Below, piece by piece: positions 1 through 58,057 of a stretch of DNA of 64,000 nt. Position 1 is the stretch's first letter. Each line of letters begins with the position of its first letter. The notes beneath the pieces were generated by a model. It did not search any database, was not told the DNA's origin, and saw only the letters and a list, made by a program, of their open reading frames with translations. Both the position numbers and the translations under genes were made by a program. The stretch lies in the sequence record LR756500.1; one strand, given 5' to 3'.

Positions 1-460
1 CCAAGTCTTTAGATGTACTAGCGTCAATTATTTTTCTTTCTAAATATAATCTTATTTGATTATCCATTAATACACTATCTAAAGCTACTAATAATTGTTG
101 CCTACTTCTTTCAGGCCCTATATCATCAAATCTTTGAAGCAATCTCATACTAGTTACTTTTTCTTTGAAAGGTCTTATTTGTTTTGTATAATATAACAAA
201 GTAACTTCTAATTTATTTTCATCTTTGTTTCCTTCTTTTTCTTTTGCTTTTCTTAAAACTTCATCAAATTCTTTTTGCGATGCAGTTCCTTTAACAGTAT
301 TAGGAGTTCTAAATGAGTTACTTGATTTTGATTTATTTTTATCATTAGAAGTGTTTTTAAACTTATTCGCATATTCGGGTGGAATATAACGTCCACTATA
401 TCTTATTTTTTCATCATCTGCTTCTAATAAAAATTCTTCGTATTCTAAAATGTATTTCAT
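1..460 (-). CDS. Hypothetical protein with N-terminal capsid-targeting-like tag (partial, runs off window start)
   Basis: Manual translation from ATG at 460: MKYILEYEEFLLEADDEKIRYSGRYIPPEYANKF..., open to the window edge; not in the ORF track. Confidence 0.75.
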   Translation of the reverse strand, partial: MKYILEYEEFLLEADDEKIRYSGRYIPPEYANKFKNTSNDKNKSKSSNSFRTPNTVKGTASQKEFDEVLRKAKEKEGNKDENKLEVTLLYYTKQIRPFKEKVTSMRLLQRFDDIGPERSRQQLLVALDSVLMDNQIRLYLERKIIDASTSKDL

Positions 461-515
461 ATGCTTACTCTATTTTAATTATATATTTTGAATATATAAT
501 TAAAAATAGAAGGTT

Positions 516-1517
516 ATGAAGTTTATATTAGAGTATGAAGAATTTTTGTTTGAGAATACTAGATATGTAGATGCTGAAAAAGACTTTTTAAAAACTAAAA
601 GAATAGATAAAAAGACTTGGGATTATTTAATAACAAATATAAGTAATAAATATGTTTATTGGGCTGTAAGAGAGTATGTTTTAAATAAAGAAAATAATAG
701 AATTGGTAATAAATTAGAAGATTATGTTAATATATCACGAATGTATGATATCAAAGGAAATACATTTGCTAAAAATGAAAGAGATTTATATAATTTTTCA
801 GATTTTAATAAAAATAACGATTATACATTTAATAAAGTAAAAGATTTATATAATATTAATAACAGTTTAAAAATCAAACCAAAAGATATATTTAAAACTA
901 GAACAGATTTAGTTGAAATAGGAAGTAATATTTTATATGAAGATAAAGAAGGTAATATTGTAGTTGAAGCATTAAATAGAGCTGCTGATTTATATTGGGG
1001 AAGTTGGTATAAAAAAAGAGAAGGTGCATTAGTTATAGATAACTGTATGACAAGTGAACCTTCATCTGATATAAAATATTTAAAAGATGTTCCAGAGGGT
1101 GGTAGACTTTATATTATATTACCTAAAGAACCGATAATTATATTAAGAAGATTATTTATAATGGAATATGAAGATGCATGGGGATTCGTAGGTCATCAAG
1201 ATTTTTCGATTGAAGAAACTAGTTATAAAAATATGTTAATTAAAAAATATCATGCTTTATATAAAGAATTAAATAAAAAATTAAATTATAAAAATGAAGA
1301 ATTATATAATATAATTAAAAGACTTTTTGAGTTAGATAGTAAACATGTAATCTATGATTACATTTATAATGGTTATAATGAATTAGATATTAATATAGAA
1401 TTTAATGAATTTATTAAACAATTAAACAATAATTTTAATCATATACCATCATATATGTCAGAGTATTTTATAGAATTATATAATTATTATCATGGATTAA
1501 CTAATAAAATAGTTTAA
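516..1517 (+). CDS. Hypothetical protein with CTS-like N-terminal tag
   Basis: 333 aa ORF starting MKFILEYEEFLFE; ATATATA motif upstream at about 490. Confidence 0.7.
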   Translation: MKFILEYEEFLFENTRYVDAEKDFLKTKRIDKKTWDYLITNISNKYVYWAVREYVLNKENNRIGNKLEDYVNISRMYDIKGNTFAKNERDLYNFSDFNKNNDYTFNKVKDLYNINNSLKIKPKDIFKTRTDLVEIGSNILYEDKEGNIVVEALNRAADLYWGSWYKKREGALVIDNCMTSEPSSDIKYLKDVPEGGRLYIILPKEPIIILRRLFIMEYEDAWGFVGHQDFSIEETSYKNMLIKKYHALYKELNKKLNYKNEELYNIIKRLFELDSKHVIYDYIYNGYNELDINIEFNEFIKQLNNNFNHIPSYMSEYFIELYNYYHGLTNKIV

Positions 1518-1616
1518 AAATTAATTGAACATAAGTAATAAAAATAGAAAATGATATAAAAAAGTATTTACTTAAAGGTTATAATAAAATATATTTTAAA
1601 TTATAACATTTAAAAA

Positions 1617-2633
1617 TTATTTTCTTTGTTTGTATTTATTTTTTATATAATCATTAATATCTTCTTCACTCATACCTTTACGTCTTAAAATATTTTTCAT
1701 AACATGTGTACGTTTTTCTTCTTTACTCATATTTTTTAAATTTACTGTTGGTGCTGGACCAGATTTAATTTGTTTATATTTAAATTTAATATAGTCGTTA
1801 ATCTCTTCATCACTTGCGCCTTTACGTCTTAAATGAGTTTTAATAGTAGATATATTGAAATTTGATCTTTCTTCATCATTAAGAGATGAAGAAAGATTAT
1901 TAAATTTACTCATAGTGTATTCATTATATTTTTTAACGACTTCTTTAGCCATATTTAATGTCGGTTCATTAGCTAACCAAACATATAAATTATGTTTGGT
2001 TTTAGAAAATTCATGCTTATCTATAACTTTAGAACTAAAATATTGTTCTACTTCTTTTAATGTTTTAGGATCTTTAGATAAAGAATATGAATCATAAAGC
2101 TTTAATATTTTAGTACATATAATATTAAATTTAGGACTTAAATTAAAAAATACACGGCTTGGATATGCATTACCATTGTTTTGTTCTATTTCTCTGTATA
2201 TAGTTTGGAGTGCAAGAAGTACCGCTTCTTCTTGCGATAATCCATCATATTTAGGAGATGTATCTTTAAGTATATTACGTCTATCTATAAAATCGCTAGA
2301 AAGTTCATTTAGTATTTTTTCAGTTAATTCTTTAGTAGGGGCTTCATTTGTTTTTAAAGAATATAATGGTTTATTAGGCACTAAATCGCTATTTAAAAAA
2401 TATTTAAATATTAAACGTAATATTGCAGCATAATTTTTAATATTTTCTTTTTTAAGAAACTCTATAGGTTTAAACTCTTCGTTACTTAAATAAATTTTAT
2501 TTGATTTTTTAAAAAGTTCATATATTTTGGTTAAACTTTTGTATAAATCATTTATATTTTGTTGTTTATTTTTTTCTTTACGACCTGTATTAGCTTCTAA
2601 TAAAAATTCTTCGTATTCTAAAATGTATTTCAT
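1617..2633 (-). CDS. Hypothetical protein with CTS-like tag and duplicated C-terminal motif
   Basis: Starts MKYILEYEEFLLE; C-terminus has two copies of LRRKGxSxExINDYIKxKYKQ. Confidence 0.7.
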   Translation of the reverse strand: MKYILEYEEFLLEANTGRKEKNKQQNINDLYKSLTKIYELFKKSNKIYLSNEEFKPIEFLKKENIKNYAAILRLIFKYFLNSDLVPNKPLYSLKTNEAPTKELTEKILNELSSDFIDRRNILKDTSPKYDGLSQEEAVLLALQTIYREIEQNNGNAYPSRVFFNLSPKFNIICTKILKLYDSYSLSKDPKTLKEVEQYFSSKVIDKHEFSKTKHNLYVWLANEPTLNMAKEVVKKYNEYTMSKFNNLSSSLNDEERSNFNISTIKTHLRRKGASDEEINDYIKFKYKQIKSGPAPTVNLKNMSKEEKRTHVMKNILRRKGMSEEDINDYIKNKYKQRK

Positions 2634-3013
2634 TTATTTAATTCATTTAAGTTAAAGTATCTAAACCCTCTAAATCCTTTCATAGGAATTGGCTCTATTT
2701 CATTAAATTGTCCTGATCTTTCTATAAATTTACCACTCCAATTTTTTCCTGTAGTAGAACATGTAAAAGATTTTTCCTTTATTCCTGTTATTTTCATCCA
2801 TCCCACAACATTACCATTATAATTTAGGTAACATTTATTTCCTACTATATCTTTTTTAGGAAGAAATGGAACTTTAAAATTTAAATTATTAGATCCATTT
2901 TTAACAGAATCTAATTCTTTTCTATATTCATTCCAATCTATATTAGAAGGTATAGTTATTATTATATCACTCTTATCAGTAACAACTTCTTCATATTCTT
3001 TTATATACTTCAT
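2630..3013 (-). CDS. Hypothetical protein with CTS-like tag (possibly ASCH/PUA-like beta fold)
   Basis: Starts MKYIKEYEE; motifs GNVVGWMKITG and PIPMKGFRGFRY; 4-nt overlap with the next gene; fold call tentative. Confidence 0.5.
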   Translation of the reverse strand: MKYIKEYEEVVTDKSDIIITIPSNIDWNEYRKELDSVKNGSNNLNFKVPFLPKKDIVGNKCYLNYNGNVVGWMKITGIKEKSFTCSTTGKNWSGKFIERSGQFNEIEPIPMKGFRGFRYFNLNELNK

Positions 3014-3027
3014 TACTTAAATTATTT

Positions 3028-3660
3028 TTAGATAAATTTTATGTTTAAATATCTCAGTTCTGCTGCTTTAGCAAAATCTCTATCTGTTGATTTATCACCT
3101 ATTATTCTTGAATTAGCTTTATCTATTTTTCCATATTTTTCTATAGTTTTAGTAATAGCTCCTATATTAGGTTTTCTCATAGGATCGGTTCTTTTAGTTG
3201 TTATACTATAGAAATAATCTAATAATGGAATTCCTTTTGCTGCTAATGATTTTTTAATTTTATTCATTTTATATTTAAAATCATCTTCATTAACATATCC
3301 TGATTCAATTCCTCCCTGATTAGTTACAATAATTATTTTATAATTTTTTTTAACCATTATTTTTAAATATGCAATACAATTACTTTTTAATATCCAATCA
3401 TTTTTATCCTCTGAAAATGTTCCTCCTGATGCAGGTTCAATTAATGTATGATCTAAATCTACAAAAATATATTTATTACCAAAAATTTCAGTTCTTATAT
3501 CATCTTTATTTTCAGTATCATATGTTATTTCCTTTTGAATATCTAGAGTTTTTTCCTCTGCATCTTTCTTTATAATTTTTTTCTTTTTCTTTCTTCTAAA
3601 AAGTCTTTGAAAAAAATTATCTTCATTCAAAAAATCATCATATGTTTGTATATATTTCAT
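3028..3660 (-). CDS. HAD-family (subfamily IIIA) phosphatase, polynucleotide 3'-phosphatase/GmhB-like, with CTS-like tag
   Basis: HAD motifs FVDLDHTL, IVTNQGGI, RKPNIG, IGDKSTDRDFA; N-terminus MKYIQTYDDFLNE. Confidence 0.85.
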   Translation of the reverse strand: MKYIQTYDDFLNEDNFFQRLFRRKKKKKIIKKDAEEKTLDIQKEITYDTENKDDIRTEIFGNKYIFVDLDHTLIEPASGGTFSEDKNDWILKSNCIAYLKIMVKKNYKIIIVTNQGGIESGYVNEDDFKYKMNKIKKSLAAKGIPLLDYFYSITTKRTDPMRKPNIGAITKTIEKYGKIDKANSRIIGDKSTDRDFAKAAELRYLNIKFI

Positions 3661-3671
3661 ATTTTTATAAT

Positions 3672-3995
3672 TTAAGTTAATCCACTATGAATTTTATCAT
3701 ATATAGGTTTTTGTAAAATTTTCCAATTAATATCTGGATTCTTTTCTTTGATTTTATTTAAAATTTTATCTATTCTTTTATTTAATTCATTAGAAGGTTC
3801 ATCATTTTTCCAATAATCATCATTTAAAGAAACATTATATATTTTATCTGCTTGCATTTCATCTTCTTTAGTAACTACTATATTTTCATAATCTGGTATT
3901 AACTCTTTAGCATATTTTATAAATTTATCATTTTGTTCATTTAGTTCTTCGGAACTACATGCTATATACTCTTCATACTCTTTTATATACTTCAT
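3672..3995 (-). CDS. Hypothetical protein with CTS-like tag
   Basis: Starts MKYIKEYEEY. Confidence 0.65.
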   Translation of the reverse strand: MKYIKEYEEYIACSSEELNEQNDKFIKYAKELIPDYENIVVTKEDEMQADKIYNVSLNDDYWKNDEPSNELNKRIDKILNKIKEKNPDINWKILQKPIYDKIHSGLT

Positions 3996-3998
3996 TAT

Positions 3999-5204
3999 CT
4001 ATAATTTTATTATATCAAATTCAAAATTCAATCCAGCATCTAAACAAGCTTTTCTTTTCAATTCATTAACTTCTTTATTCTTATTATACGTATATACACT
4101 CTTTACTTCAATTATCTTATTCTCACTAACTATATAAATATCTGGATAATAACGATGCTCTTTACCATCAATTGTAATATATATTACTTTCCCTATATAT
4201 CTTTCAATATCTTTATTCTCAATCATTATATCACTCTCATCATATCCCATCTCAAACAATTTATCCAATGCTTGTGGTTCATAGCCCTGCACTCTAGTTA
4301 TTTTACCAGAAGGCAATTCGTAACCTTTAAATCTAAATGCATTCATCATTGCTCTTTCAAATATAACTAAATCTTTCATTTGATGATCTACTCCATATCT
4401 TTCAATTAATGTTTCTTTAATTTTTTCACGAATAATTGATGATTTAAATATCTGATCTACACCATATCTTTCAATTAATGTATTTTTTATTTTTTCTTTT
4501 ATTTCATCAATATTTAATTTTAATGAACAATCTACATTATATCTTTTCATTAGTGTTTCTTTTATTTTTTTAGTTATACCTTCCTTTTTATGTCCATAAA
4601 TTTTATCTTTAGTTTCATTACATTTATTTATAACTTCTTTTACTTTCCAATTATGATCAACTCCATGCTTTTCTAAATAATTTTTTTTATATACTTCTCT
4701 AACAGTATTTGATTCAAATGGAGTTTTAAAACCATATTTTTTAATATTTGTATTTTCAATTTTTTTTCGAAATTCAGGATGTTGAATTGGTGCCTCAACT
4801 CCATATTTTTCTAACATAGTTTTTTTATACTTTTTTGCCCTTTTAATATAATGATTAGGATCATTCTTTTTTGTATTAACTATCTCATTGTACATATTAC
4901 TATTAATTTTACAAATTTTACTACAATACTTTTGATATCCTAAAGCTCTTCCTTTAAATCCTAATTCATTTTCTTTACATATAGGACAAATTGAAATATT
5001 TTGTACNNNNNNNNNNNNNNNNNNNNNNNNTTGAGAAAATTTAAAATCTTTATCTTTAAAATACTTATTATGATATTCTAATATTATTTTGAACTCTTTA
5101 TTAAGATTTATTTCAAACCAGCTTTCAGCAGTATTAGCAGCTTTAGTTGCTTTTGAATAATAATATGACATTTTTTCTTCATCTAAAATTATTATACTTT
5201 CCAT
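3999..5204 (-). CDS. Putative free-standing homing endonuclease (CxxC zinc motif, KYGV repeats, C-terminal PD-(D/E)XK-like domain)
   Basis: CPIC...CSKIC, repeated KYGV(E/D) units, YYPDIYIVSENKIIEVKS; paralogous to 43257-44270; spans the N gap at 5007-5030. Confidence 0.7.
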   Translation of the reverse strand: MESIIILDEEKMSYYYSKATKAANTAESWFEINLNKEFKIILEYHNKYFKDKDFKFSQXXXXXXXXVQNISICPICKENELGFKGRALGYQKYCSKICKINSNMYNEIVNTKKNDPNHYIKRAKKYKKTMLEKYGVEAPIQHPEFRKKIENTNIKKYGFKTPFESNTVREVYKKNYLEKHGVDHNWKVKEVINKCNETKDKIYGHKKEGITKKIKETLMKRYNVDCSLKLNIDEIKEKIKNTLIERYGVDQIFKSSIIREKIKETLIERYGVDHQMKDLVIFERAMMNAFRFKGYELPSGKITRVQGYEPQALDKLFEMGYDESDIMIENKDIERYIGKVIYITIDGKEHRYYPDIYIVSENKIIEVKSVYTYNKNKEVNELKRKACLDAGLNFEFDIIKL

Positions 5205-6138: not shown

Positions 6139-6666
6139 TTAATTTAATATATTGTATAAGTTTTTAATTTTTGTTATTAATTCATTATTTGATTCTTCTA
6201 TTTTAAAATTTTCATTATAATGAGTTAATAAATCATATTTAATATCAAAATCAAAAGATTCATCATAAGATGCTTCTTTTTTTCTTTTCTTGGCCAGAGC
6301 GGCTATAGCAGCAGTACCTCCAACAACAGCAGCTCCAACACCTAATTTTTTCTTTAAACTCCAAGGTCTTTTAATATTTTTACCACTTTGTTTAACTAAA
6401 TTTTTAACTGCAGCTTTAGATTTCATTTTTCTATATTGTGCATTAGTCATTTTTTTACCATCAACATTGATCAATTCTTTACTTTGTTTTTTAATTTTAG
6501 TATTATCAAATAAACCTTCTTCTATAGTAGCATCTAAAAGTTTTTCAAATTCTACTTTATCTTCTGATTCATTATAAATATTAAATAATGAGTTAACAAA
6601 TAATTCTTCATCAACTATAATAGAATCTATTTCATTATAGTCATTTAAATCTAATAAGTATTTCAT
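6139..6666 (-). CDS. Hypothetical protein with CTS-like start and one Gly/Ala-rich hydrophobic segment
   Basis: Starts MKYLLDLNDYNE; LGVGAAVVGGTAAIAALA flanked by Lys clusters. Confidence 0.6.
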   Translation of the reverse strand: MKYLLDLNDYNEIDSIIVDEELFVNSLFNIYNESEDKVEFEKLLDATIEEGLFDNTKIKKQSKELINVDGKKMTNAQYRKMKSKAAVKNLVKQSGKNIKRPWSLKKKLGVGAAVVGGTAAIAALAKKRKKEASYDESFDFDIKYDLLTHYNENFKIEESNNELITKIKNLYNILN

Positions 6667-6667
6667 A

Positions 6668-6973
6668 TTATTGTATCGTTTGTTTTATTTTATCTATTGT
6701 TTTTTGTCCATTAGCTTTTATAAATTCTGCATTTTGTAATGCTTTTTCTTTTTCTTTTTGAGCTAATATATCAGCCTTTGCTTTAATTGCTAAAGCTTTT
6801 TCATTTCCTCTTTCTTTAGCTCTTGTTACTTTATCGTCTATAACTTGTTTAATTTTTTCGATATCTTGTTCATTTAGATTTTCTTCTTTAGAAAAAAATT
6901 CATCTATTTCCATATTTGATGTAATAAATTTTTCGTATATTACATGTTGTTCATAAGTTAAAAGTATTTTCAT
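6668..6973 (-). CDS. Hypothetical coiled-coil protein with CTS-like start
   Basis: Starts MKILLTYEQHVIYE. Confidence 0.55.
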   Translation of the reverse strand: MKILLTYEQHVIYEKFITSNMEIDEFFSKEENLNEQDIEKIKQVIDDKVTRAKERGNEKALAIKAKADILAQKEKEKALQNAEFIKANGQKTIDKIKQTIQ

Positions 6974-8330: not shown

Positions 8331-8936
8331 ATGAAATATATTAAAGACTATAACNNNNNNNNNNNNNNNNNNNNNTTACCTGATGTAAATTTAAATCCAT
8401 TATATTTAGAAGCTAAAGAAAGTAAAAGATATAAAGAGTTAATTGAATTAGAAGTAAAAGATATATCTACATTACAACAATAAAAGAATGGTTCATTTCA
8501 ATTTTCTCCATTATTTAGAATCAAAGAAGTTCAAACATTAAAAGATAATCCTTTGGTTAAAAAGCAACCTAAAGAAAAAATTTTAGATTATGATTTAATT
8601 TTAAATAATGAATTTAATAAATTTGAAATTTTTCAATGTCGTAAAAAAAGTGTTAGATTAAAACATGGATCTGGAACATATGCAGGTTTAAATATTGGAA
8701 AAATTGGAAAAAAATATACTAACTATAATGATGCTTTGGAATTTATAATAAATACTATAAAAAAAGATAAAAAGAATGTTGAAGATATTGTAAAATATTG
8801 GAAACAAGAAATAAAAAATAATATGTCAGTTATTAGTATAGTTAGAAAAATATTTGAACTTGAATTTATTAAAAAATATTTTAATATACCAGATCATTTA
8901 ATTAATGCTGATGATTTTGGATTCTTAGATAATTAA
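8331..8936 (+). pseudogene. CTS-tagged hypothetical gene with one in-frame TAA (8481-8483); pseudogene or consensus error
   Basis: ATG 8331 (MKYIKDYN) is in frame through the 21-nt N gap with track ORF 8553-8936; a single TAA interrupts; ends NADDFGFLDN. Confidence 0.55.
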
Positions 8937-8951: not shown

Positions 8952-9335
8952 ATGAAATACATAAAAGAGTATAGTGAATTTGTTAATGAATCAGTCGGAA
9001 CTCCATTGACATTATATACAGCAAGAGCTTCTAGTTATTTATCTCAACAATTAAAAATAGTTAAGGCTATTGAAGATAAAAAAACTCTTATGAATAAACC
9101 TAATACGGATAACGAAACACGAAAAACATTACAGGAGCATATAGCAGTCTTAAAAGAAAAGGAGGAAAAGATTAAACTGAATCTTGATAAGGCTATAGAA
9201 AAAGCTAGTGAAAAAGTTAAAAAATTACCACAAGCTAAAAGAAATGCTTTAATGAAAATGGGAGAATCTGAAAAAGAAAAGGTTGATAAAATTAAAGAAC
9301 AAATAATAGAGCTAAAACAAATAAAGAGGAATTAA
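8952..9335 (+). CDS. Hypothetical coiled-coil protein with CTS-like tag
   Basis: Starts MKYIKEYSEFVNES. Confidence 0.7.
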   Translation: MKYIKEYSEFVNESVGTPLTLYTARASSYLSQQLKIVKAIEDKKTLMNKPNTDNETRKTLQEHIAVLKEKEEKIKLNLDKAIEKASEKVKKLPQAKRNALMKMGESEKEKVDKIKEQIIELKQIKRN

Positions 9336-9549: not shown

Positions 9550-10719
9550 TTAAACTTTTTTAAATTCTATTTTTTTATTATCTATATCTATTTTAGAAAT
9601 AATTACTTCTATTTCTTCATTTTCTTTTAATTCAATACCTTCAAATTCTGATATATGAAGTAAACCTACAATGCTTTTTTCTAATTCGATAAATGCACCA
9701 TAGTTTTTAATTGATGTTATTCTACCTTTTGCTTTGCTTAAAGGTGGATATTTTTTATCTATATCTACCCATAAATCTTTTTGTAATTGAGTTAAAATTA
9801 TTTTATTTTCATTTATAATATCTTTAACTAAAAATTTAACTTTATCTCCAGCTTTAATACTTCTATTATTGAATTTATTTAACCATTCATCATTTAATTC
9901 ATTCATAGGAATTAAACCAGTTAAACAACCAAATTGCGCAAATATTCCAAATTTTGTAGTTCCAGTAATAAATCCTTCATATTCATCATTAATATTATCT
10001 CTAATTTTATCTAAATTATTTCCAACTTGTGTTTTTAGATATTCTCTATGAGATACTACTATAGTACCTTTTTCTTTAGAATAATTTATAGGCATTACAA
10101 TTAATTCTTTTCCTATAAGAGAATTAAAATCAATTAATTTATTCATTCCACCTAAAGATCCTGGCATAAATACTTCTATACTGTCAATTTTTAAAAGATA
10201 ACCACCGTGAATTAATTCTTTTACTATTGCTTTATATGCAACAGGTTTTCCTACTGAATCTAAAATTTCTTGGAATTTATTATCTTTAATAGCATCTGAA
10301 AATGATGCTCTAAAATCATTACTATTATTTTTTGAAATTTTTACTTTAATTTCATTACCTACTTGTAAAAGATCAGAATATTTTTTATCTTCTTTTTTAA
10401 GGTTTAACGTTACTGTATGTTTACTGTCTACTTCTAAGCAAGCATCTTCTTTATTAATTGAAACTATCTTTGCTGTTATCGTACTTCCATTTTGCAATTC
10501 AGTATATTCAAAGTCATTATTAGGACCATTTGTATATAACTCATATGCTTCTTTTACATAAGATTCATCACTAAAGATTTTTGTTTTTCTTGGGATTTCT
10601 AATTCTACGAATTCTTCTTCGAATGGATTGTGTACGTTAGTTTTAATTTTTACTTTTGTTAACATTTTAAAAATAATTAAGGGTTGATAATGGATTAATC
10701 TAGGTGCATTTGGATGCAT
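9550..10719 (-). CDS. rpsA: Ribosomal protein S1-like protein (about 4 S1/OB domains); true start probably MLTKVK near 10665
   Basis: S1 repeats: GSTITAKIVSI, IEVFMPGS, EGFITGTTKFGIFAQF, KGRITSIKNYGAFIELEKSIVGLLHISE. Confidence 0.85.
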   Translation of the reverse strand: MHPNAPRLIHYQPLIIFKMLTKVKIKTNVHNPFEEEFVELEIPRKTKIFSDESYVKEAYELYTNGPNNDFEYTELQNGSTITAKIVSINKEDACLEVDSKHTVTLNLKKEDKKYSDLLQVGNEIKVKISKNNSNDFRASFSDAIKDNKFQEILDSVGKPVAYKAIVKELIHGGYLLKIDSIEVFMPGSLGGMNKLIDFNSLIGKELIVMPINYSKEKGTIVVSHREYLKTQVGNNLDKIRDNINDEYEGFITGTTKFGIFAQFGCLTGLIPMNELNDEWLNKFNNRSIKAGDKVKFLVKDIINENKIILTQLQKDLWVDIDKKYPPLSKAKGRITSIKNYGAFIELEKSIVGLLHISEFEGIELKENEEIEVIISKIDIDNKKIEFKKV

Positions 10720-12140: not shown

Positions 12141-12923
12141 TTATTCTGTAAAAGATTTAGTACTTAATGGTGTTTCAAAGCCCATAGATATAGGGGTACC
12201 TGTGGGCGAACCTAAATTTCCGATGTGACAGTGCCCGTCAAATATAGGTTTAAAGCTCGTTCCTTGTACAAGAGCTTCTGCTGCAGCTGCCCCTAATTTT
12301 ATTTTAGTTGCTTCTACTTCAGCTGTTCCAGATACTGTTAATGTTGCATCACCAGAACATTCACCTACTATGTTAACGCATTTAACGTTTATGTCAGCAG
12401 CTACTTCTAAGTTAACTGTGCCATCTGCTAATATTTCAAATAAATCTCCATTAGGATTTGTAATATGAAAGTTATTGTCAGGATCTAAATTAATTATAGT
12501 TTCTTTATAATCTATACTTAATCCTTTTCCTTGTGTAAAATAAATTTTTAAAGCTTCATCTGTATCAAATATTAAAGAATGAAAATTTATAGGATCTGTT
12601 TTAATTTCTTCTTTTAATTCATCAGAAATTCTTTGATGAAAAAAGTATTCAGGATGATAAATATTACCATTATCAAATTTAATTGATACTATAGATCCAA
12701 CTCTTGGAACTGAATAATAACCACCACCTGTTATTGATCCAGCTGTAGTATTATTAGCAGGATAAGCCCATGGAATATGTTCATTCGATAAATTATCAAA
12801 TTTACCATATACTTTTACTTTTATTCTTCCTTCATATTGAGGATCTTCATTAACAACTACTTCACCTAACCAAGTAGATGTTGTTAAATTGTCACTATAA
12901 TATTCTTCTTGTGTTAGTCTCAT
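12141..12923 (-). CDS. Baseplate central spike, gp5/gpV/Gp138-like
   Basis: N-terminal OB motif WLGEVVVNEDPQYEGRIKVKVYG...IPWA, beta-helix region, C-terminal metal-binding HxH (GHCHIGNLGSPT). Confidence 0.85.
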   Translation of the reverse strand: MRLTQEEYYSDNLTTSTWLGEVVVNEDPQYEGRIKVKVYGKFDNLSNEHIPWAYPANNTTAGSITGGGYYSVPRVGSIVSIKFDNGNIYHPEYFFHQRISDELKEEIKTDPINFHSLIFDTDEALKIYFTQGKGLSIDYKETIINLDPDNNFHITNPNGDLFEILADGTVNLEVAADINVKCVNIVGECSGDATLTVSGTAEVEATKIKLGAAAAEALVQGTSFKPIFDGHCHIGNLGSPTGTPISMGFETPLSTKSFTE

Positions 12924-12925
12924 AA

Positions 12926-14605: not shown

Positions 14606-14615
14606 TTTCTATATT

Positions 14616-43255: not shown

Positions 43256-43256
43256 A

Positions 43257-44270: not shown

Positions 44271-44296
44271 GATATATTTTTATTTTATATATCATG
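44268..44296 (-). promoter_or_regulatory. Perfect 10-bp hairpin covering the endonuclease start codon
   Basis: catgatatat (44268-44277) pairs with atatatcatg (44287-44296); the ATG is at 44270-44268. Confidence 0.7.
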
Positions 44297-44328
44297 AAAA
44301 TTTTATAGTAATTACCCATACCAATAAT

Positions 44329-45177
44329 TTATCTAAATCCTATAGTATTTCTATACTTTTCATCTCCTTTTATTACCATTCCATCTAATTGAAATGGTGA
44401 ATATTTTTCTCTATATTCTTCAAATTCATCATAAATTTTCTTAAATTCTTTAATATCGTTAAAATATTTGACATAAATAGGATATTCTTTATTAAAACCT
44501 AAATTTGTTAAAATATCTATAGTTTTATTTTTTAGTGGAAATTCAAAACTATTACCTTTATGAATTCTTAATTCGTAAGCAACAAAAACTAAATCTTTTA
44601 TAATATCTTTATTAATTTCATCTCTAGATAATATTCCAGCTACAAAATTTCTAGCATTTTTAAATTTTTTAGCATATTTTTTATCAAATATTTTTATAGG
44701 TATAACTACTTCTCCTCTAACTTCAATTTTTTCTTGAATTGAAATTTTGTTAGGAACTATAAAAAGCATTTTACTTTTTTGATCAAATCCATTTTCACCG
44801 TCTCCTCTTGTTAAAGCATTTTCTAAAATTCCGTATTCATATACAAGATTCATAGAATTTCCATCAAATTTAGGAGTTACTTCAAATTCATAAACTCCTT
44901 TTGATTTAATATTTAATGACCAGTTATCAAATTCAGATATTACTTTTTGCATGTCATTACTATCATAAACACTTAATTTACCTAAAGTTCCCATTGGAGA
45001 TGGATGAAGAAATTTTCCAGCTTTAACTGATCCAACAATAAAAGGAACAGTTGAACCGGCTTCTTTTAATTTTTCTTCTAAAATATCAAACTCTGCATCA
45101 GTCATTATAGGATTACCTGCATAGTAAGTATCTTTAGCTTTTAAATATAATGTTTCTTTATCTTTTAAATTAAGCAT
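44329..45177 (-). CDS. ligA: NAD-dependent DNA ligase, N-terminal adenylation part
   Basis: YYAGNPIMTDAEFD, motif I PKFDG, ALTRGDG, EVRGEV, RNFVAG, motif IV LDGMVIK; stops at IGFR. Confidence 0.9.
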   Translation of the reverse strand: MLNLKDKETLYLKAKDTYYAGNPIMTDAEFDILEEKLKEAGSTVPFIVGSVKAGKFLHPSPMGTLGKLSVYDSNDMQKVISEFDNWSLNIKSKGVYEFEVTPKFDGNSMNLVYEYGILENALTRGDGENGFDQKSKMLFIVPNKISIQEKIEVRGEVVIPIKIFDKKYAKKFKNARNFVAGILSRDEINKDIIKDLVFVAYELRIHKGNSFEFPLKNKTIDILTNLGFNKEYPIYVKYFNDIKEFKKIYDEFEEYREKYSPFQLDGMVIKGDEKYRNTIGFR

Positions 45178-45185: not shown

Positions 45186-45680
45186 TTATTGTTTAAACAT
45201 TTTTATAATACTATCTGTAGGCATATTATAGATTAAATTTATTAAATAATCTTTTCTTGATTTTAAATCTTCAAAAATAAAATCTCCAAAATAAATTTGT
45301 ATAAGTGTTATATCTTCGTTACGATTTAAATCAATTAAAGAATTATTTTTAAATATTTCCATTTTAGAAGAGTTCAAATAATCTTTTAAATAAAAATTTG
45401 ATTTATATGCATTTGAGTATAATGATTCTTTAATAATCAATACAACATCATTTCCTGAATACAAAAAAGTATTATATTTTTTAATTGTATAAACAGCTTC
45501 AAATGGAATTTTTATTGTTGATGCATCTTTACTTTTAATATTTAAAGTATCACTTATAATACCAAACATATAAATATTTTCTATTCTATTATTTACTGTT
45601 GTTTCATGCGAATATTCATATATAAGTACTCCAACTATTATAAGAACTAATAAAATACATAAATATAAAAGATATTTCAT
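45186..45680 (-). CDS. Hypothetical membrane-anchored protein
   Basis: N-terminal hydrophobic helix LLYLCILLVLIIVGVLIY. Confidence 0.55.
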   Translation of the reverse strand: MKYLLYLCILLVLIIVGVLIYEYSHETTVNNRIENIYMFGIISDTLNIKSKDASTIKIPFEAVYTIKKYNTFLYSGNDVVLIIKESLYSNAYKSNFYLKDYLNSSKMEIFKNNSLIDLNRNEDITLIQIYFGDFIFEDLKSRKDYLINLIYNMPTDSIIKMFKQ

Positions 45681-47817: not shown

Positions 47818-48714
47818 TTAATTTTCACTAATTTCTATAAATATTTCGTTAACTTGTGGAAAATCTTCTTTAATATGTAATTTGATGTGATCAACTGTAT
47901 CTTCTATTTTGTATCCTCTTGTAAAATCTCCCACACTTATAGATAATAATAATAAATATTGATTTTTTCCCATAGTCATCGTTTTAATTCTATTAATACG
48001 ATGAACCTCAACATTATCGTTAATTATTTCTTTAATTTTATTTCTATCTTCTCTTGGCATACTTTCACCTATTATTAGTTTTCTGAGTTCATTAGTTAGT
48101 GAAATAGCAACATAAGCTAAAATAAGTCCAATTATAATACTACCAATTGCATCAAATATAGGATTAAACAATGAAAGAATTGTACATATTAAAGCAACTA
48201 TTAAACCAGTCAATGCTGCAGCATCTTCTAATAATATAACAATTAAATTTATATCTATTGATTTTTTAATTTCTTTAAATAAATTTCCCTTTGAAGTTTT
48301 TCTAAATTGATTATATGCAACTAAAAAAGTTTTAGATTCAATAATAACTGAAATTCCTAATACTCCAATAGCCCACCAAAAAAATTCAATTGGTTGTGGA
48401 TTAGCTAATTTATGAAATCCTTCATATACTGAAAATGTTGCTCCTACGAAGAATAACAAAATAGCTACCATAAAGGCCCAAAAATATTCTTCTCGACCAT
48501 AACCAAAGGGATGTTGTTCATCACTAGGCTTTTTTGATCTTTTACTTCCTATAAGAAGAAATATTTGATTTAAACAATCTGCAGTTGAATGTATTGCTTC
48601 GGCCAACATTGATGCACTTTTTGTAAAAAATGCTGCTACAAATTTGCATATTGCTATTGTTGTATTTCCGACAAGTGCAGTAATTACTGCTTTTGTTGAA
48701 TTATCATGACTCAT
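47818..48714 (-). CDS. Cation diffusion facilitator (CDF) family transporter
   Basis: SASMLAEAIHSTAD, HPFGYGREEY, six TM helices, LLEDAAA, cytoplasmic C-terminal domain. Confidence 0.92.
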   Translation of the reverse strand: MSHDNSTKAVITALVGNTTIAICKFVAAFFTKSASMLAEAIHSTADCLNQIFLLIGSKRSKKPSDEQHPFGYGREEYFWAFMVAILLFFVGATFSVYEGFHKLANPQPIEFFWWAIGVLGISVIIESKTFLVAYNQFRKTSKGNLFKEIKKSIDINLIVILLEDAAALTGLIVALICTILSLFNPIFDAIGSIIIGLILAYVAISLTNELRKLIIGESMPREDRNKIKEIINDNVEVHRINRIKTMTMGKNQYLLLLSISVGDFTRGYKIEDTVDHIKLHIKEDFPQVNEIFIEISEN

Positions 48715-50813: not shown

Positions 50814-52937
50814 TTAAAACTTTATTTTAATTACTCTTTTAAATGAGCCTTGTAATCTTACAATAAGTTCATCTCGAACTGTTGCATTAAAACCTAAGCC
50901 TGATAATTGTTTTTCAGATGGTTCAATCATTGTTGTATTTCCTAATACTTCAAGAACTTTTCGATGATTTGCTAATTCTGGAATTAAATTTTCTGTATGA
51001 AAACTTCTAATAGATGTAGGAGATTTACAACCATCTAACATGAAAAAGAAATGTTTATTTCCAACTTCATTACCGTCCCAGTGATTAGGACTTAAACATA
51101 CTAAATTTACTTTATGGAATTCATTTGTTTGTAAACCATATAGTTCTTTAGATACAGAATTACCTTCTATTACAGGTAATAAATGTTTAATAGTAAAATA
51201 TCCATTCTTTAAAGTTACTTCGGCAATTTGAATTTTTCCTTGAGCGTTTCCTTTATACTCATAAATATAAGATTCTCCTTCAAATTCTATTTCAGCTTTA
51301 AATCCTGTATTCTTTCCGGCATTAAAATTATGATTAAAGAATTTATAAACACCGTCTTTCATTTTAAATTTATCTATCCATGTAATATTTTCAACTCCTA
51401 ATGTACGTGGACTGATCATATCGATATCTAATTCACCAGACATGGTGGTTAAACCTCCACGTCCTTTTCTATATGAACCATAATATATTTCAGTTCCATT
51501 TGGTTCAATAGCATGAACATCAAAATCACAAATACTCCTGCCATCTTCATTCCAAGATATAGAACATCTTAATACGGCATCAATTCGACCTCCAGCATCT
51601 TTAACAGCTTCTTTAATCATAGATTTACCGGCTAAATTTCCATTAAATGTCCAACTATAATTATTTGACCATTTAAATATTGGTTTACTTTCTTTAATAT
51701 TTGCTGTTGTAAGTGAAGACATATTTCCATTATGATCATTTGATAAATATGCTTCAACTGAAGTACAATTTGGAAGTATATCTTGCATAAATTTATCAAT
51801 AGATACTTCTTCAATTCCATCAAATTCACTTCTTTTATGTCTTGTGGAAGTTGATTTAACAGTATCAAATATAGATACTGCTTTTAATTTTCCATCTCCA
51901 ACATTAATATGTTTGATTTCAGAAGCTTTAATATCATCGATATTAGCAAATCTTCTATCAAAAGATTCAGTATATCCATTTTCTTCAACAAAAATACGAG
52001 CTTCTTCAATTTGTTTTTTTGTAATTGGAGCCGTTGTTTTCATGTAATTAACTGGATCAACTCTTTTATTCCATGCTTGACATGCGTCATTTAATTCTTT
52101 GCCTTCTGCTAATTCGGAACATAATACACCAATAAGCTCATTTTTAAATTTAGCAAATGGTAATTTATAAGAAGCTGTCCAACACCAATTATTTCTTTTC
52201 CCTGAAGGTAATTCATCATATTGTTTTTTCAATGGAATGAATTGTTCAATTTTGTATAAATGTGTTTGTCCATCAAGCAAGCTTCCTTGAATGATAAGAT
52301 CTTTTACCAAATTTAATGTATCAATGGAAATTTCTTCCATAGCACGTTGAAATACGTTTTTTGAATCTCGATATTCACCCATAATAGATTCAATAGATTT
52401 ACTACCCATATCAACAAACTGCTTAGGTAAAAATAAATGAAAATGATTAAAGGTTCTTATTTCATTTTGTTTAACGACACCATATTTTTCTGCTTCTTCT
52501 TTGGTATATCGTTTTACGTTTTTATCAATACCTAATTTAAATAAAGTATTAGTTTTAGATATACTTTCGTAAGGAAGAGAATTTAATTCATTAAATGTTT
52601 CAAAAAATACTTCTGCAACATTAGCATTTTTAAGTGCATCTGATATTGCTTTAGCTGATGCAGAATATTCTTCTGAAGCTTCAACATCAAACATTGTAAT
52701 AATATTATAATCTTCATCGATAGATACAATATTACCGTATCTACGAATAAAATTATTACATAAAGTACAATTATGATAAGTACTTTGAGGGTCTCTAAAA
52801 ATTGGATTATGTTCTTTTGGGAATGCATTAATATATAAATCCCATACTTGTTGTCCAGATAAAGAACTTCTAAACAACTTTCCAGTAGAACACATTTTTT
52901 CAAATTGCTCCTGTATTAATTTTTTAAATTCTATCAT
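50814..52937 (-). CDS. Large hypothetical protein with a YfaP/TerD-like beta-sandwich domain
   Basis: LRCSISWNE...DFDVHAIEPNGTEIYY...ELDIDM...VENITW. Confidence 0.6.
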   Translation of the reverse strand: MIEFKKLIQEQFEKMCSTGKLFRSSLSGQQVWDLYINAFPKEHNPIFRDPQSTYHNCTLCNNFIRRYGNIVSIDEDYNIITMFDVEASEEYSASAKAISDALKNANVAEVFFETFNELNSLPYESISKTNTLFKLGIDKNVKRYTKEEAEKYGVVKQNEIRTFNHFHLFLPKQFVDMGSKSIESIMGEYRDSKNVFQRAMEEISIDTLNLVKDLIIQGSLLDGQTHLYKIEQFIPLKKQYDELPSGKRNNWCWTASYKLPFAKFKNELIGVLCSELAEGKELNDACQAWNKRVDPVNYMKTTAPITKKQIEEARIFVEENGYTESFDRRFANIDDIKASEIKHINVGDGKLKAVSIFDTVKSTSTRHKRSEFDGIEEVSIDKFMQDILPNCTSVEAYLSNDHNGNMSSLTTANIKESKPIFKWSNNYSWTFNGNLAGKSMIKEAVKDAGGRIDAVLRCSISWNEDGRSICDFDVHAIEPNGTEIYYGSYRKGRGGLTTMSGELDIDMISPRTLGVENITWIDKFKMKDGVYKFFNHNFNAGKNTGFKAEIEFEGESYIYEYKGNAQGKIQIAEVTLKNGYFTIKHLLPVIEGNSVSKELYGLQTNEFHKVNLVCLSPNHWDGNEVGNKHFFFMLDGCKSPTSIRSFHTENLIPELANHRKVLEVLGNTTMIEPSEKQLSGLGFNATVRDELIVRLQGSFKRVIKIKF

Positions 52938-53325: not shown

Positions 53326-53490
53326 ATGGAAGATTTTAAGTTATTAAAACTGTCGAAGGTGTGTAAAGAATTTAATGTAACTAGACAAACATTATATAAT
53401 TGGAAGGAGAAAGGCGTATTGAATTTTATAAAAATTGGCGGTTTGAATTTTATAAAAGATAAAGATATTAAAGCATTAATAAATAAGTAA
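53326..53490 (+). CDS. Stand-alone MerR/excisionase-type HTH (IS607 TnpA N-terminal-like) mini-gene
   Basis: Manual translation MEDFKLLKLSKVCKEFNVTRQTLYNWKEKGVLNFIKIGGLNFIKDKDIKALINK; the stop abuts the tnpB start. Confidence 0.75.
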   Translation: MEDFKLLKLSKVCKEFNVTRQTLYNWKEKGVLNFIKIGGLNFIKDKDIKALINK

Positions 53491-54813
53491 TTGAAGACAA
53501 TTAAATTACCATATAAAACTGATGAAGATTTAACATCTATATTTAAACAGTACTCTAGTGTTGTAAGATATAGTTATAATAGATTCATAGATGGTATGAA
53601 TGAGAAAGAGATTAGGTTAATGATTAAAGAGTTGAGTAATATTGATTTACTTAATTCATGGTTGATTCAGTGTGCGATATTGGATGGTAAAGCGATGCAG
53701 AAGCGGTTTGAAGATAAAAAGGTTGTATTTGGCGGAAAGTTTAATTTTATAAATAGATTAAAAGGTAAAATCTCTAAAAATGAGTTTGATTTGAAACGAT
53801 TAAGCCCCTTAAATATTCAGGGTGAAGTATTAAAGAAGGGAAATAGGAGTTTTGAGTTAGATATAATAGAGAATAATAAAATAGTATTTAAGTTAAATAA
53901 AGCTAAGCATATAGAACTCTATCTTCCTAAATTAAGGAGTAATATAAAAAAGGAGTTGTATAGGATTCAGCAGTTGAATGAAGTAAAATATAATGAACAA
54001 GGTTATACGTTTTCTGTTAGATTTGATATGAAATATGTTTATATAAGTTTTGAAGAGTTTAAGAATGAAGAAGTTAAGCAGTTGAATGAGAATAGGTATT
54101 TAGGTATAGATTTGAATCCAGATACAATAGGAATATCCGTTTTAGAAAATAATCAAGTAATTTATGCTCAAGAGTTTAGTTTAAAATTAATTTTTGATAG
54201 AATTTTAAATAAAAATTTAAGTTCGGATTCTGTTAAGATGAAGTATTATCAGAATAAGTTAGGTTTTGAAACGATCGAGATTGCTAAATCTGTATCGTTG
54301 ATTGCTAGACGGTTTGGTTGTAAGACGGTTTATGTTGAGGATTTGAAGTTTAATCAAAAGTTGAGTAAGGAGCAAAAACATAATCATTTAGGAAATAGGA
54401 AGTGTAGAAATTTATGGAAGAGAGATAAATTTATTTCTAATTTGACTAAGCGATTGAATGTATTGGGTATTGGTTTATATGAAGTTAATCCAGCATATTC
54501 TAGTTTTATAGGAAATTTAATGTATGAATATACTGATGCGGTAAATGCATCAATAGAGATTGCTAGACGAGGGTTTGAGTATAGAATAAAGAAAAGCAAG
54601 ATAGGGTTTTATCCAGTTTTTGATGTGAAACACCGATGGAAGGAAATGGTTGCATCGTTTAAAGATTGGAAGGAATTTTATATTGAGGTGGTAAAAAATT
54701 CGAGATTGAAATATCGAGTTTCATTGGATGAGTGTAAGTATTTGTTTGATGTTTTTAAGCAAAATTCGCATAAAAGTATGGTATTAAATTATGTCTTTAG
54801 GGACAAAATATAA
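53491..54813 (+). mobile_element. tnpB: TnpB copy 4 (IS607-like, no zinc finger)
   Basis: VVRYSYNR, LGIDLNPD, VYVEDL, VNPAYSS, DAVNASIEIARRG. Confidence 0.85.
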
Positions 54814-54982: not shown

Positions 54983-55825
54983 TTATTTTTTTATTTTTTG
55001 TAGCTTTTCAAATAAAATTCTTTCTTCTTTAGATATAGATTCTGGAATTATTATTTGTACATTTATTATTAAGTCTCCTGTTTGTAAAGGATTTTCCATT
55101 AATGGCATTCCTTTACCATGAATTCTAAATTTTTTATTATTTGGAGTACAAGATGGTATTTTAATTTTTAATTTATTTTCGAATGTTTCTATTTCAACAT
55201 GGCCCCCTAGTATTGCAGTATATAAATCTACCTCTAAATTATAATAAAGATCTAAATTATTAACATTAAAATTTTTATCACTTATAACATGAACTATTAC
55301 AATTAAATCTCCATTATTAGGTGTTCCTTTTCCACCATATCCTTTAAATCTCAATTTGGTATTATCTCTAACACCTTTCTTAATATTAACGGAGTGTTGT
55401 TCACCTCCTGCATATACATTTTTATATATACCATTAAAAGCTTCTTTAAGTGTTAAATATACATCTACATGATAATCTTGTCCCTGCCCATTCCAAGCAC
55501 TAGCAAAAATACTATCAAAAATATCAGATGCATTAATATTATCCCATGACTCACGATTATAGAAATCTTTCATGAAATCATCATAAACATAATATCTATT
55601 AGCACCTTCAAGATCATATTTATTTCTTTTATCTGCATCACTTAATATAGAATATGCTGAAGTAATTTCTTTAAATTTATCTTCAGCTTCTTTATCTTTA
55701 TTTTTATCGGGATGCCATTTAAGAGCTAATTTTCTGTAAGCTTTTTTTATTTCATCTTGGGTTGCATTTTTATCTATCTCTAATATGTCATATAAACTTT
55801 TATCCACCCTTCCTTTATTTTTCAT
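54983..55825 (-). CDS. dnaJ: DnaJ/CbpA-type co-chaperone (J domain plus C-terminal domain, no Zn finger)
   Basis: LYDILEI...[17 protein letters not shown]; GDLIVIVHV; GKGMP. Confidence 0.92.
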
Positions 55826-56559: not shown

Positions 56560-57132
56560 ATGGCAATATTAACAAAATCGGAAATATTTAGACTAGGTTT
56601 TAAATCTGTTGGAGAGAATGTTTATATCTCAGACAAAGCTAGTTTTTACGGAACACGAAATATAGAACTAGGTAATAATGTAAGAATTGACGATTTCGTC
56701 GTTATCTCAGCTGGAGAAAAAGGAATTCAAATCGGTAATTATATTCATATAGGTGTTCAATCTTCTTTAATAGGACAAGAACATATTCTATTAAATGATT
56801 TTTCTAATATATCTTCTAAAGTAGCAATTTATAGTTCTAATGACGATTATAGTGGCCAGACTATGAGCAATCCTATGATACCGAACGAATATAAAAATGT
56901 TTATCATGCTGGAGTTTATATTGGAAAACATGTAATAATTGGATGTGGAAGTGTTATATTGCCAGGTTCATATATTGGCGATTCATCAGTTATTGGAGCA
57001 TTATCTATAGTTAAAGTAAATAGTAGTATTCCTGATTTAGAAATATGGGCAGGTATTCCAGTTAAATATATTAAGCCTAGAGATAAAAATCATTTATTAT
57101 TAGAAGAAAAATTTATGACTTCTAATATATAA
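56560..57132 (+). CDS. Hexapeptide-repeat (left-handed beta-helix) O/N-acetyltransferase
   Basis: IELGNNVRIDD, IGNYIHIG, IGKHVIIGCGSVILPG, IWAGIPVK. Confidence 0.88.
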   Translation: MAILTKSEIFRLGFKSVGENVYISDKASFYGTRNIELGNNVRIDDFVVISAGEKGIQIGNYIHIGVQSSLIGQEHILLNDFSNISSKVAIYSSNDDYSGQTMSNPMIPNEYKNVYHAGVYIGKHVIIGCGSVILPGSYIGDSSVIGALSIVKVNSSIPDLEIWAGIPVKYIKPRDKNHLLLEEKFMTSNI

Positions 57133-57145
57133 ATAAAATGTTACA

Positions 57146-57562
57146 GTGAAACATATAAAGGAATATGAAGATTTTGTTTATGAATTTAGATCAACTAGAT
57201 TAATAAGAAATACAGGATCTAAATTTATAAACAAATTTAAAAATAATGTACCAAGTATTAGAGATTTTAATGGAATATCACTTGTTAAAAATCTTATTGA
57301 TAATTATGAAACACGAAATAAAATAACTAAAGTTTTATTAAAAACAGAAGATAAAGATAAAATAAAAGATTTAAAAGACGATTTAAATGATAATAAAGAT
57401 GAACATACTAAAATATCTGATAAAATTAAAACTAATACTGAAAAATTATCTTCATCTAATAAAAAAGTATCCGATAAGGATAAAGATAAAATTACAGAAA
57501 TGAAAAAGAAAATTCAAAAAATACAAGATGAATTTAAAAACATAAAATCTAAAAATAAATAA
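57146..57562 (+). CDS. Hypothetical protein with CTS-like tag
   Basis: Starts (GTG) MKHIKEYEDFVYE; TATAAATA at 57128-57135. Confidence 0.65.
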   Translation: MKHIKEYEDFVYEFRSTRLIRNTGSKFINKFKNNVPSIRDFNGISLVKNLIDNYETRNKITKVLLKTEDKDKIKDLKDDLNDNKDEHTKISDKIKTNTEKLSSSNKKVSDKDKDKITEMKKKIQKIQDEFKNIKSKNK

Positions 57563-57565
57563 TAT

Positions 57566-58057
57566 ATGAAATACTTAACAGAGTTTTTTGATTTCATTAA
57601 TAACGATATTAATGAAAATGATATGTTATCTGAATATTTAAAGGAAGAATATTTAAATGAAGATTTTAGTTCTGAGTTTTATAATTTAGAAAATATAAAT
57701 GAATCTAAAAAATTATATGATACTGCTTTATGGAAAGAATATAGAAAAATAAAACCTTTACTAAAAGAAGGAAAACAATATAAAAAAGATACTAAAAGAT
57801 ATTTTGAATTACAAAAGGAATATATGTCAAAAGTATTAGAAGAAGATAAAGTTAATATTAAATATATGTCTGATCTTTTAATTGAAAAACTTAATTTATT
57901 AAATGAAGGAAGTAGAGATTATACTCTAAATGAAATGAGAAATAATAAAATTAAATTAATAGATAATTATAAGAAAAAACTTAATAGACAAATTAATAAA
58001 GACTTAAAAGAAATGGAAGCGTTTTTTGATAGTAATCCTAAAATTTTATTGGTTTAA
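57566..58057 (+). CDS. Hypothetical protein with CTS-like tag
   Basis: Starts MKYLTEFFDFIN; further LNE motifs. Confidence 0.6.
   Translation: MKYLTEFFDFINNDINENDMLSEYLKEEYLNEDFSSEFYNLENINESKKLYDTALWKEYRKIKPLLKEGKQYKKDTKRYFELQKEYMSKVLEEDKVNIKYMSDLLIEKLNLLNEGSRDYTLNEMRNNKIKLIDNYKKKLNRQINKDLKEMEAFFDSNPKILLV

Follow-up and report, generated by a model that had tools for sequence, protein, structure and literature searches.

The window analyzed here, a stretch of 64,000 nucleotides from sequence record LR756500.1, carries a set of open reading frames (ORFs) that begin with variants of one short peptide, a 13-residue leader set in front of largely unrelated bodies. Base 1 of the window is base 314,061 of the record (100% identity), which is deposited as "uncultured phage" without annotation and comprises 462,018 bp with 24% GC. 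An alternative genetic code is not indicated for this phage, with TAA, TGA, and TAG serving as stops 552, 93, and 39 times, respectively, and with the head genes intact under table 11. Across the genome, the consensus of the leader is M-K-[YF]-I-[KL]-E-Y-E-[ED]-F-[LIV]-[NL]-E. The original prediction listed 13 ORFs of the window with such a start and compared it with the capsid-targeting sequence (CTS) of phage T4. All 13 of these ORFs exist, and 10 carry a strong leader, clearly starting in the form M-K-[YFH]-I-x-x-Y-x-x-F-[LIV]-x-E; of the other three, one is weak, one is doubtful, and one is masked by a gap in the sequence. The scores quoted below are position scores in bits, given genome-wide to the N-termini of ~684 ORFs.

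At the left end of the window, the ORF at 2-460 (-) scores 36.2 bits and starts with MKYILEYEEFLLE followed by A; 153 N-terminal residues of its product lie inside the window and 203 residues in the full record, and it has no Pfam match. The same start, again followed by A and scoring 36.2 bits, is found on the 338-residue orphan at 1617-2633 (-). Between them lies an orphan of 333 residues at 516-1517 (+) (32.6 bits), which starts with MKFILEYEEFLFE followed by N, is preceded by ATATATAA 24 nucleotides upstream, and has no Pfam lead; ESM Atlas searches with the bodies of both orphans gave no usable lead. The ORF at 2630-3013 (-) (127 residues, 24.9 bits) starts with MKYIKEYEEVVTD and has the leader core only, with no [LIV]-x-E in residues 1-30. 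It is followed by a polynucleotide 3′-phosphatase-like protein of 210 residues at 3028-3660 (-) (32.1 bits), in which the start MKYIQTYDDFLNE, followed by D, leads into a lysine-rich linker and then into a PNK3P/HAD domain at residues 65-192 (PF08645, E 2.4e-21). In the 107-residue ORF at 3672-3995 (-) (30.1 bits), which starts with MKYIKEYEEYIAC, the first [LIV]-x-E is an L-N-E ending at residue 20.

The starts at 6666 and 6973, both on the minus strand, fared less well. The former belongs to an ORF of 175 residues at 6139-6666 with a weak, degenerate leader (MKYLLDLNDYNEID, 10.2 bits), the latter to one of 101 residues at 6668-6973, whose score of 2.1 bits (MKILLTYEQHVIYE) is at the edge of noise and whose membership is doubtful. 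The ORF at 8331-8483 (+), with ATATATA 28 nucleotides upstream, reads MKYIKDYN and then enters a gap (8355-8375); it is counted as probable only, because the gap masks positions 9-13 of the leader. The same nominal frame is the sole open frame on either side of the gap and, but for a single TAA at 8481-8483, has no stop up to 8936. In that frame, the ORF at 8553-8936 (+), ending in INADDFGFLDN, is probably the remainder of a single tagged gene that the TAA interrupts, or else a separate gene. A second gap, at 5007-5030, falls within the untagged ORF 3999-5204 (-) and does not affect the finding.

The other strongly tagged ORFs of the window are more scattered. That at 8952-9335 (+) (127 residues, 33.4 bits) starts with MKYIKEYSEFVNE followed by S and has no Pfam match. 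A leucine-rich repeat (LRR) protein of 229 residues is encoded at 17796-18485 (-), among baseplate and tail genes (31.8 bits; LRR_14, E 8e-25); it starts with MKYIKKYKDFLNE followed by S and ends in a C-terminal NADDFGFF motif, and in an AlphaFold2 single-sequence model (mean predicted local distance difference test score 63.6) the leader lies outside the LRR core. Toward the right end, the ORF at 57146-57562 (+) (138 residues, GTG start, 29.4 bits) begins with MKHIKEYEDFVYE followed by F, has ATATATAA 21 nucleotides upstream, and shows no Pfam match, and the adjoining ORF at 57566-58057 (+) (163 residues, 20.5 bits) begins with MKYLTEFFDFINN, its first [LIV]-x-E being an I-N-E that ends at residue 17.

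Over the whole genome, the N-terminal scores are bimodal, with 31 ORFs above 20 bits, about 6 at 2-14 bits, and the remainder below 0, so that about 37 proteins, or ~5% of the genes of this phage, are tagged. From composition, only 0.06 N-termini would be expected by chance to match a loose regular expression for the leader, and in a six-frame translation this expression matches at ORF starts only and never within long ORFs. When the N-termini of all ORFs were clustered without bias by BLOSUM similarity, one dominant cluster likewise emerged, with 36 members in this genome. As the original prediction had it, non-structural genes such as the ligase, DnaJ, and the cation-efflux transporter are without the leader, scoring below 0; the structural genes, those of tail and baseplate included, also score below 0. 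A motif scan of the genome and its relatives, proposed as a check, gave the 31 strong and ~6 weak ORFs here and the leader in uncultured viral relatives as well.

The leader is conserved at the level of the peptide. Synonymous codons vary freely at its conserved residues (AAA/AAG 20/11, TAT/TAC 15/8, and ATA/ATT 17/10 in this genome), which argues for selection on the peptide itself. Its helical hydrophobic moment, at 0.53, exceeds that of other N-termini (0.29; p=2.5e-12), and the T4 CTS has a value of 0.45. The features of Sec, Tat, or lipoprotein signals were not found, as the leader is an acidic, amphipathic peptide that lacks both a hydrophobic core (10 or more residues) and a lipobox Cys; in the N-terminus clustering, true lipoprotein-like N-termini group apart in a small cluster of their own. 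The end of the leader resembles a protease site in that an [LIV]-x-E ending within residues 11-30 is present in 31/36 tagged ORFs and in 235/647 others (36%; p=3e-9), and in 22 of the 36 it ends exactly at residue 13.

The bodies behind the leader are of many kinds. In a BLAST comparison of the 37 tagged bodies genome-wide, 25 are singletons, and the other 12 form one linked group, joined via LRR repeats and/or a common C-terminal motif; the earlier statement that the bodies are unrelated thus holds for the 25 and fails for the 12. The tagged proteins range in size from 81 to 491 residues, and the Pfam domains found in them (PNK3P/HAD phosphatase, LRR, a DUF2201 metallopeptidase plus VWA, an R2K-type ATP-grasp, and a weak GNAT) always begin downstream of the leader. 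The closest homologues of the phosphatase body begin at the HAD motif, without leader or 64-residue extension. The leader is, then, a modular peptide added to unrelated bodies.

The C-terminal motif that helps to join the group of 12 has the form [YE][ED]HLxNADDFGF[FL]DN-COOH and occurs on 13 proteins, all of them leader-bearing. Two are in the window (17796-18485 (-) and 8553-8936 (+)) and 11 elsewhere in the record, for example, at record coordinates 12631-15077, 180972-181730, and 197835-199531. The motif was not found in 205 tagged proteins of relatives, among the matches listed, nor in the complete relative G012 described below. We take the NADDFGF tail to be reminiscent of the acidic-aromatic partner-binding tails of proteins such as the single-stranded DNA-binding protein SSB, at its C terminus, and the ribosomal-stalk proteins. 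A two-part address, in which the N-terminal leader would load more than 160 cargo families into the heads of a large clade of T4-related jumbo and huge phages, most of them uncultured, and the C-terminal tail would direct 13 proteins of this phage to a hub in the host once injected, may be imagined from these sequences, but we regard it as rather unlikely.

The genes expected for a T4-type head are encoded in the same record, in the order portal, protease-scaffold, and capsid protein. The protease-scaffold ORF, of 632 residues (record coordinates 226725-228623), has in its first ~145 residues a Peptidase_S77 domain (the T4 gp21 family; 44.8 bits), and its GELDHP and ISSRAAGS align with the His and Ser regions of T4 gp21, the alignment running through GEL(N/D)HP and (V/I)SSR(G/A), where the catalytic His and Ser are located. 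With 116 bits against Gp23, the capsid protein has kept the N-terminal region W-x-P-[IL]-[IL]-E-G. In the scaffold part of the fusion, [LIV]-x-E is 2.4-fold denser than in the proteome, which may merely reflect composition. The motif ATATATA/TATATAA lies upstream of the capsid, portal, protease-scaffold, and tail-spike genes, whereas a second promoter class, a long motif ending in TTATTATATTTAC that is likely early, stands before 33 other genes and before none of the tagged ones. A further apparent upstream motif, GATAATTAAAAATA, was rejected, as it is partly the coding end (FDN and stop) of the preceding tandem gene.

The likeness to the T4 CTS on which the original prediction rested is borne out by the profile (A1) built from 30 leaders. 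A search of the complete six-frame translation of T4 with this profile gave two matches only at E<=10, one at the start of ipIII (E 0.004) and one at that of ipII (E 0.007). In the alignment, leader residues Y7-E-x-F10-[LIV]-x-E13, with A or S next, pair with Y4-Q-E-F-I-A-E10 of T4, with A next. In the T4 sequence, IPII and IPIII start with MKTYQEFIAE followed by A and IPI with MKTFKEF, in agreement with the forms that PMC8442874 and PMC5694885 give after Mullaney & Black 1996 (for IPI, MKTFKEF...ITE, cleaved before A). MKTYQEFIAE is the published CTS (PMC8442874, PMC3012670); it undergoes a single gp21 cut and is able to bring foreign proteins into the head (PMC8442874, PMC3012670, PMC5694885), and prohead proteases of the T4 type and of giant phages all cleave after Glu (PMC5694885).

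The leader is essentially virus-specific and co-occurs with gp23 and S77 genes. A DNA pattern exactly encoding the consensus MKYIKEYEEF had no match in IMG/VR; looser patterns did match, and a degenerate pattern was found in more than 119 IMG/VR stretches at the least, where as many as 8 matches follow one another in tandem. The same degenerate pattern occurs in 4 places in 596 Gb of sequence from bacteria and archaea, namely a pair of short ORFs, an internal site, and a 1.9-kb contig of a metagenome-assembled genome. Among the matches listed, to which the counts for relatives in this paragraph apply, the consensus over 205 distinct tagged ORFs is MKHIK[LT]FE.F[VIL]NE, with E13 in 201/205 and A, S, or G next in 132/205, and codon pairs vary as they do here (CAC/CAT 82/66, TTT/TTC 128/70, AAT/AAC 123/54, GAA/GAG 160/41). 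When the tagged proteins of this genome are added, the resulting 235 make up 160 BLAST clusters. Forty of the longest cargo proteins, cytidylyltransferase-like and ferritin-like bodies among them, are unalignable past the leader, with M1, F10, and E13 invariant. Among tag-bearing contigs longer than 100 kb, 17/20 have Gp23 and/or S77, both complete ones included, and on these contigs the S77 protease is mostly the N terminus of an ORF of 577-747 residues.

One of these relatives, the complete IMG/VR genome G012 (256,444 bp), repeats the pattern on its own, with 22/346 ORFs tagged, bimodal scores, 16 of the tagged ORFs in one tandem array, and a dominant N-terminus cluster of 22. Between its portal and protease-scaffold genes, at 53445-53837 (-), lies a small acidic ORF (L155), where T4 has genes 67 and 68, with a leader-like MKKLIKTFEQFIFE followed by A that begins at the sixth residue. 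The nearest phages by capsid protein are the Lak phages and Mahaphages of 540-735 kb (further very large uncultured records, LR7565xx), Bacteroidota jumbo phages, and Sphingomonas phage PAU, and LR756502.1 (642 kb) carries at least 21 related leaders. Over 1.06 Mb of five other cultured phages, only one site matched the profile, and that weakly (E 0.08), and a tblastn search of cultured phages with the cargo of a relative gave no match.

The capsid protein of PAU is 32% identical to that of this phage, and PAU (JQ362498) provides a parallel from a cultured jumbo phage. Its dominant N-terminus cluster has 19 members, and 16-19 of its ORFs share the leader MKT[LI][ST][KQ]L[YF]E, which in seven members extends with KLNE followed by A or S. 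This variant was detected only through de novo clustering of N-termini; the same clustering found no cluster in Tenacibaculum phage PTm1. In the GenBank record, the tagged products gp142 and gp154 are labeled "internal capsid protein," and the tagged gp152 is labeled "scaffolding," while tagged gp149 and gp150 lie between portal and protease, and gp153 lies between scaffold and capsid protein.

Taken together, the sequence comparisons make it likely that the leader is a T4-type capsid-targeting propeptide that docks its cargo on the scaffold core, is cut by the S77 protease after E13, and thereby leaves in the head a payload, large and diverse, to be injected. Under such a mechanism, the tagged genes would be expressed together with the head genes, and the leader, folded as a short amphipathic helix, would attach to the scaffold at the core of the prohead during assembly; here that scaffold would be the C-terminal part (residues ~200-632) of the 632-residue protease-scaffold fusion. 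A leader-bearing protein would thus be enclosed once the gp23-type shell closes; the S77 prohead protease would then cut after the Glu of [LIV]-x-E, usually E13, and free the leader, and the mature cargo would remain in the head with the DNA and enter the host at infection. The putative cargo comprises LRR proteins, the polynucleotide 3′-phosphatase-like HAD protein, the ATP-grasp, the metallopeptidase-VWA protein, and many orphans. We infer from the sequence that the leader binds the scaffold and is cleaved at E13, that the cargo is retained in the head and injected, and that it has a role in the host, anti-defense included. Those parts of the original prediction that sequence could address all came out in its favor, as judged from the modular tag, the likeness to T4, the cleavage-type ending, the presence of head genes, the specificity for viruses, and the variant in PAU.

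A number of observations weigh against this interpretation. The likeness to the T4 CTS extends over few residues (E about 0.004-0.007 per genome), so that the match is specific but weak. Five of the 36 tagged proteins are without any [LIV]-x-E in their first 30 residues. Many leaders of LR756502.1 retain the first ~10 residues only, which suggests that cleavage is perhaps optional or that the conserved core serves another purpose. The promoter link to the head genes is modest, the ATATATA/TATATAA motif preceding 12/37 tagged genes and 108/647 others (p=0.024). Thirty-seven cargo species far exceed the packed set of T4, and a basic cargo such as that of the T4 internal proteins, although looked for, was rejected, the median isoelectric point of the mature parts being 8.1 against 6.8 in other proteins (p=0.14) and, in G012, 5.5 for cargo against 6.0 for others. 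In the model of the LRR cargo, the leader is of low confidence and the model is silent on helix formation. PTm1, pT24, PAU, MA9V-2, and MaF61 are without the exact leader by both pattern and profile, and the basis of the PAU label "internal capsid protein" could not be traced in the literature searched. For phages with exactly this leader, packaging of the tagged proteins is a prediction.

Alternatively, the leader could be an address or docking helix for a destination other than the head, such as another part of the virion, a phage-made intracellular structure, or a common chaperone or adaptor, with no obligatory proteolysis. Conservation is strongest over the first ~10 residues, neither LR756502.1 nor the majority of PAU members have the [LIV]-N-E ending, and the five members here without a nearby [LIV]-x-E could be accommodated; the position of the LRR member among baseplate and tail genes and the DnaJ encoded by the phage can be read in the same way. 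We nevertheless consider such an address unlikely, in that the profile selects only CTS-bearing genes in T4, E13 is so nearly constant in the relatives listed, the tagged PAU genes lie within the head module under labels of internal capsid or scaffold, and the tag co-occurs with the S77 and Gp23 genes.

The common start could also be the remnant of a fast-evolving paralogous family, or a promoter-linked recombination cassette, without a targeting function of its own. The relationship among 12/37 of the tagged proteins through LRR repeats and/or the C-terminal motif, and the tandem arrangement of many tagged genes, are consistent with such an origin, as is the high variability of T-even internal-protein loci, in which the CTS alone is conserved (PMC3012670). 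Against it stand the 160 body clusters, the unrelated folds (HAD, LRR, ATP-grasp, metallopeptidase-VWA, ferritin-like, and cytidylyltransferase), and 13 residues that are near-invariant across genomes of 23-40% GC while the remainder is unalignable. Near-invariance of the leader in front of unalignable bodies points to direct selection on the leader, and we judge an origin of this kind to be improbable.

A degradation or timing tag, by which a phage or host protease would control protein lifetime, is very improbable. The protease-type site at the end of the leader would suit it, as would a second small S77-like ORF (record 154951-155127, 18.6 bits) that is also present in some relatives, but the parallels in T4 and PAU indicate the head, one cut at residue 13 takes off the tag alone, and the cargo bodies give no sign of further sites. 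Least probable of all is conservation at the level of the mRNA, in which the shared sequence, at the 5′ end of late transcripts with short leaders, would act in translation initiation or regulation while the peptide would be incidental, for although the sequence is A/U-rich and a promoter-like motif AATATATA in LR756502.1 ends ~5-10 nucleotides before the ATG of tagged genes, so near that the coding start would be the mRNA 5′ end, synonymous variation is free at every conserved residue, replacements are protein-conservative (I/L/V at position 11, Y/F at position 7) and not RNA-conservative, and the spacing of promoter motif and ATG is not conserved in this genome.

With a capsid-targeting propeptide as the preferred interpretation, comparison with other packaging systems shows what would be familiar and what would be new. 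Like the T4 CTS, the leader occupies the extreme N terminus of otherwise unrelated proteins and has the core K..Y.EF[IL].E, then a small residue, in a genome that also encodes a gp21-type protease (a Glu cutter in T4), a gp23-type shell, and a scaffold. Unlike the CTS, it has 13 residues instead of 10, with three extra residues after MK, and has ~37 carriers instead of 3-4; enzymes and LRR proteins are among the cargo, which does not belong to the small, highly basic class of the T4 internal proteins, the scaffold is fused to the protease, and the role of the leader is predicted from sequence. The tagged genes of PAU cluster in the head module, and here too there is a likeness, but its leader of 14 residues is in a different register and was missed by the exact pattern and the profile, and its protease and scaffold are separate genes.

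Phages phiKZ, 201phi2-1, and SPN3US present a broader likeness, in that a gp21-related protease trims many proteins of the head interior after Glu once they have been loaded; the SPN3US paralogues gp53 and gp54 have an identical 15-residue N terminus (PMC5694885). Their propeptides, however, are mostly of 100 or more residues with no common leader, as compared to 13 residues here, and the cleavage motif is A/S/G-x-E where [LIV]-x-E is found here (PMC5694885), so that the leader does not have the properties of a phiKZ-type propeptide (~100 residues, A/S/G-x-E). The targeting peptides of encapsulins and microcompartments are alike in that a short amphipathic tag takes unrelated cargo into a protein shell. 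This is an analogy and not a claim of membership, as encapsulin tags are usually C-terminal, are not removed by proteolysis, work in another shell context, and have no sequence similarity to the leader. Ferritin-like proteins are a classic type of encapsulin cargo, and one tagged protein of a relative, among the matches listed, is ferritin-like.

In the literature searched, the coverage of which is incomplete, background on T4 and on giant phages was found, and the leader is not described. The T4 mechanism is known; the 13-residue form, the expansion to ~5% of a proteome, and the spread through an uncultured clade of jumbo and huge phages appear to be undescribed there. If the leader is a packaging signal, the injected proteomes of huge uncultured phages could be read from sequence; this phage would have ~37 injected proteins and the 256-kb relative 22, and the clade as a whole would have more than 160 body families. 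As nearly all of the cargo proteins are orphans, they would make a focused list of candidates for host takeover in the first minutes of infection and for counter-defense. Capsid targeting as known from T4 would then scale from 3-4 cargo proteins to ~5% of the proteome, and the leaders of T4, PAU, this clade, and the Mahaphages suggest an old, evolvable signal. For engineering, the leader would add natural variants to the tag with which foreign proteins are already brought into T4 heads.

Other features of the genome concern its promoters, mobile elements, and tail. A long promoter-like motif, TTTAnnTnnAAACTTTnTTATTATATTTAC, is present 15-35 nucleotides before non-structural genes in ~25 copies genome-wide, in the window within the regions upstream of 45186-45680, 50814-52937, and 58625-59371. 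The motif TTTAnnTnnAAACTTTnTTATTATATTTAC resembles the Bacteroidota sigma-A -33/-7 consensus, a likeness that points to early genes transcribed by the host polymerase and to a host among the Bacteroidota; the motif ending in TTATTATATTTAC resembles the -7 element. Three genes similar to TnpB or Cas12f1 (OrfB_IS605) are located in the tail and baseplate region at 14616-15821 (-), 20351-21529 (-), and 34803-35672 (+); two have near-identical N-termini, and the third is copied at record coordinates 222077-222946, beside the head module. The gene for NAD-dependent DNA ligase (42065-45177, -) is split, with the adenylation domain at 44329-45177 and the rest at 42065-43255, and between the parts lies a DUF7487 gene (43257-44270) that has its own ATATATAA motif upstream and may be a mobile insertion.

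The minus strand also encodes an S1-domain protein (9550-10719), a DUF285 repeat protein (25145-26299), the cation-efflux transporter (47818-48714), and a full DnaJ with J and C-terminal domains (54983-55825). Three ORFs resembling tail fibers or spikes, at 26311-29196, 30211-32133, and 32153-33154 (-), have in common the N terminus M[SP][KR]I[QK]NKQI.V..NFD.N, which is presumably a common baseplate-attachment module and a second shared N-terminal address in this phage.

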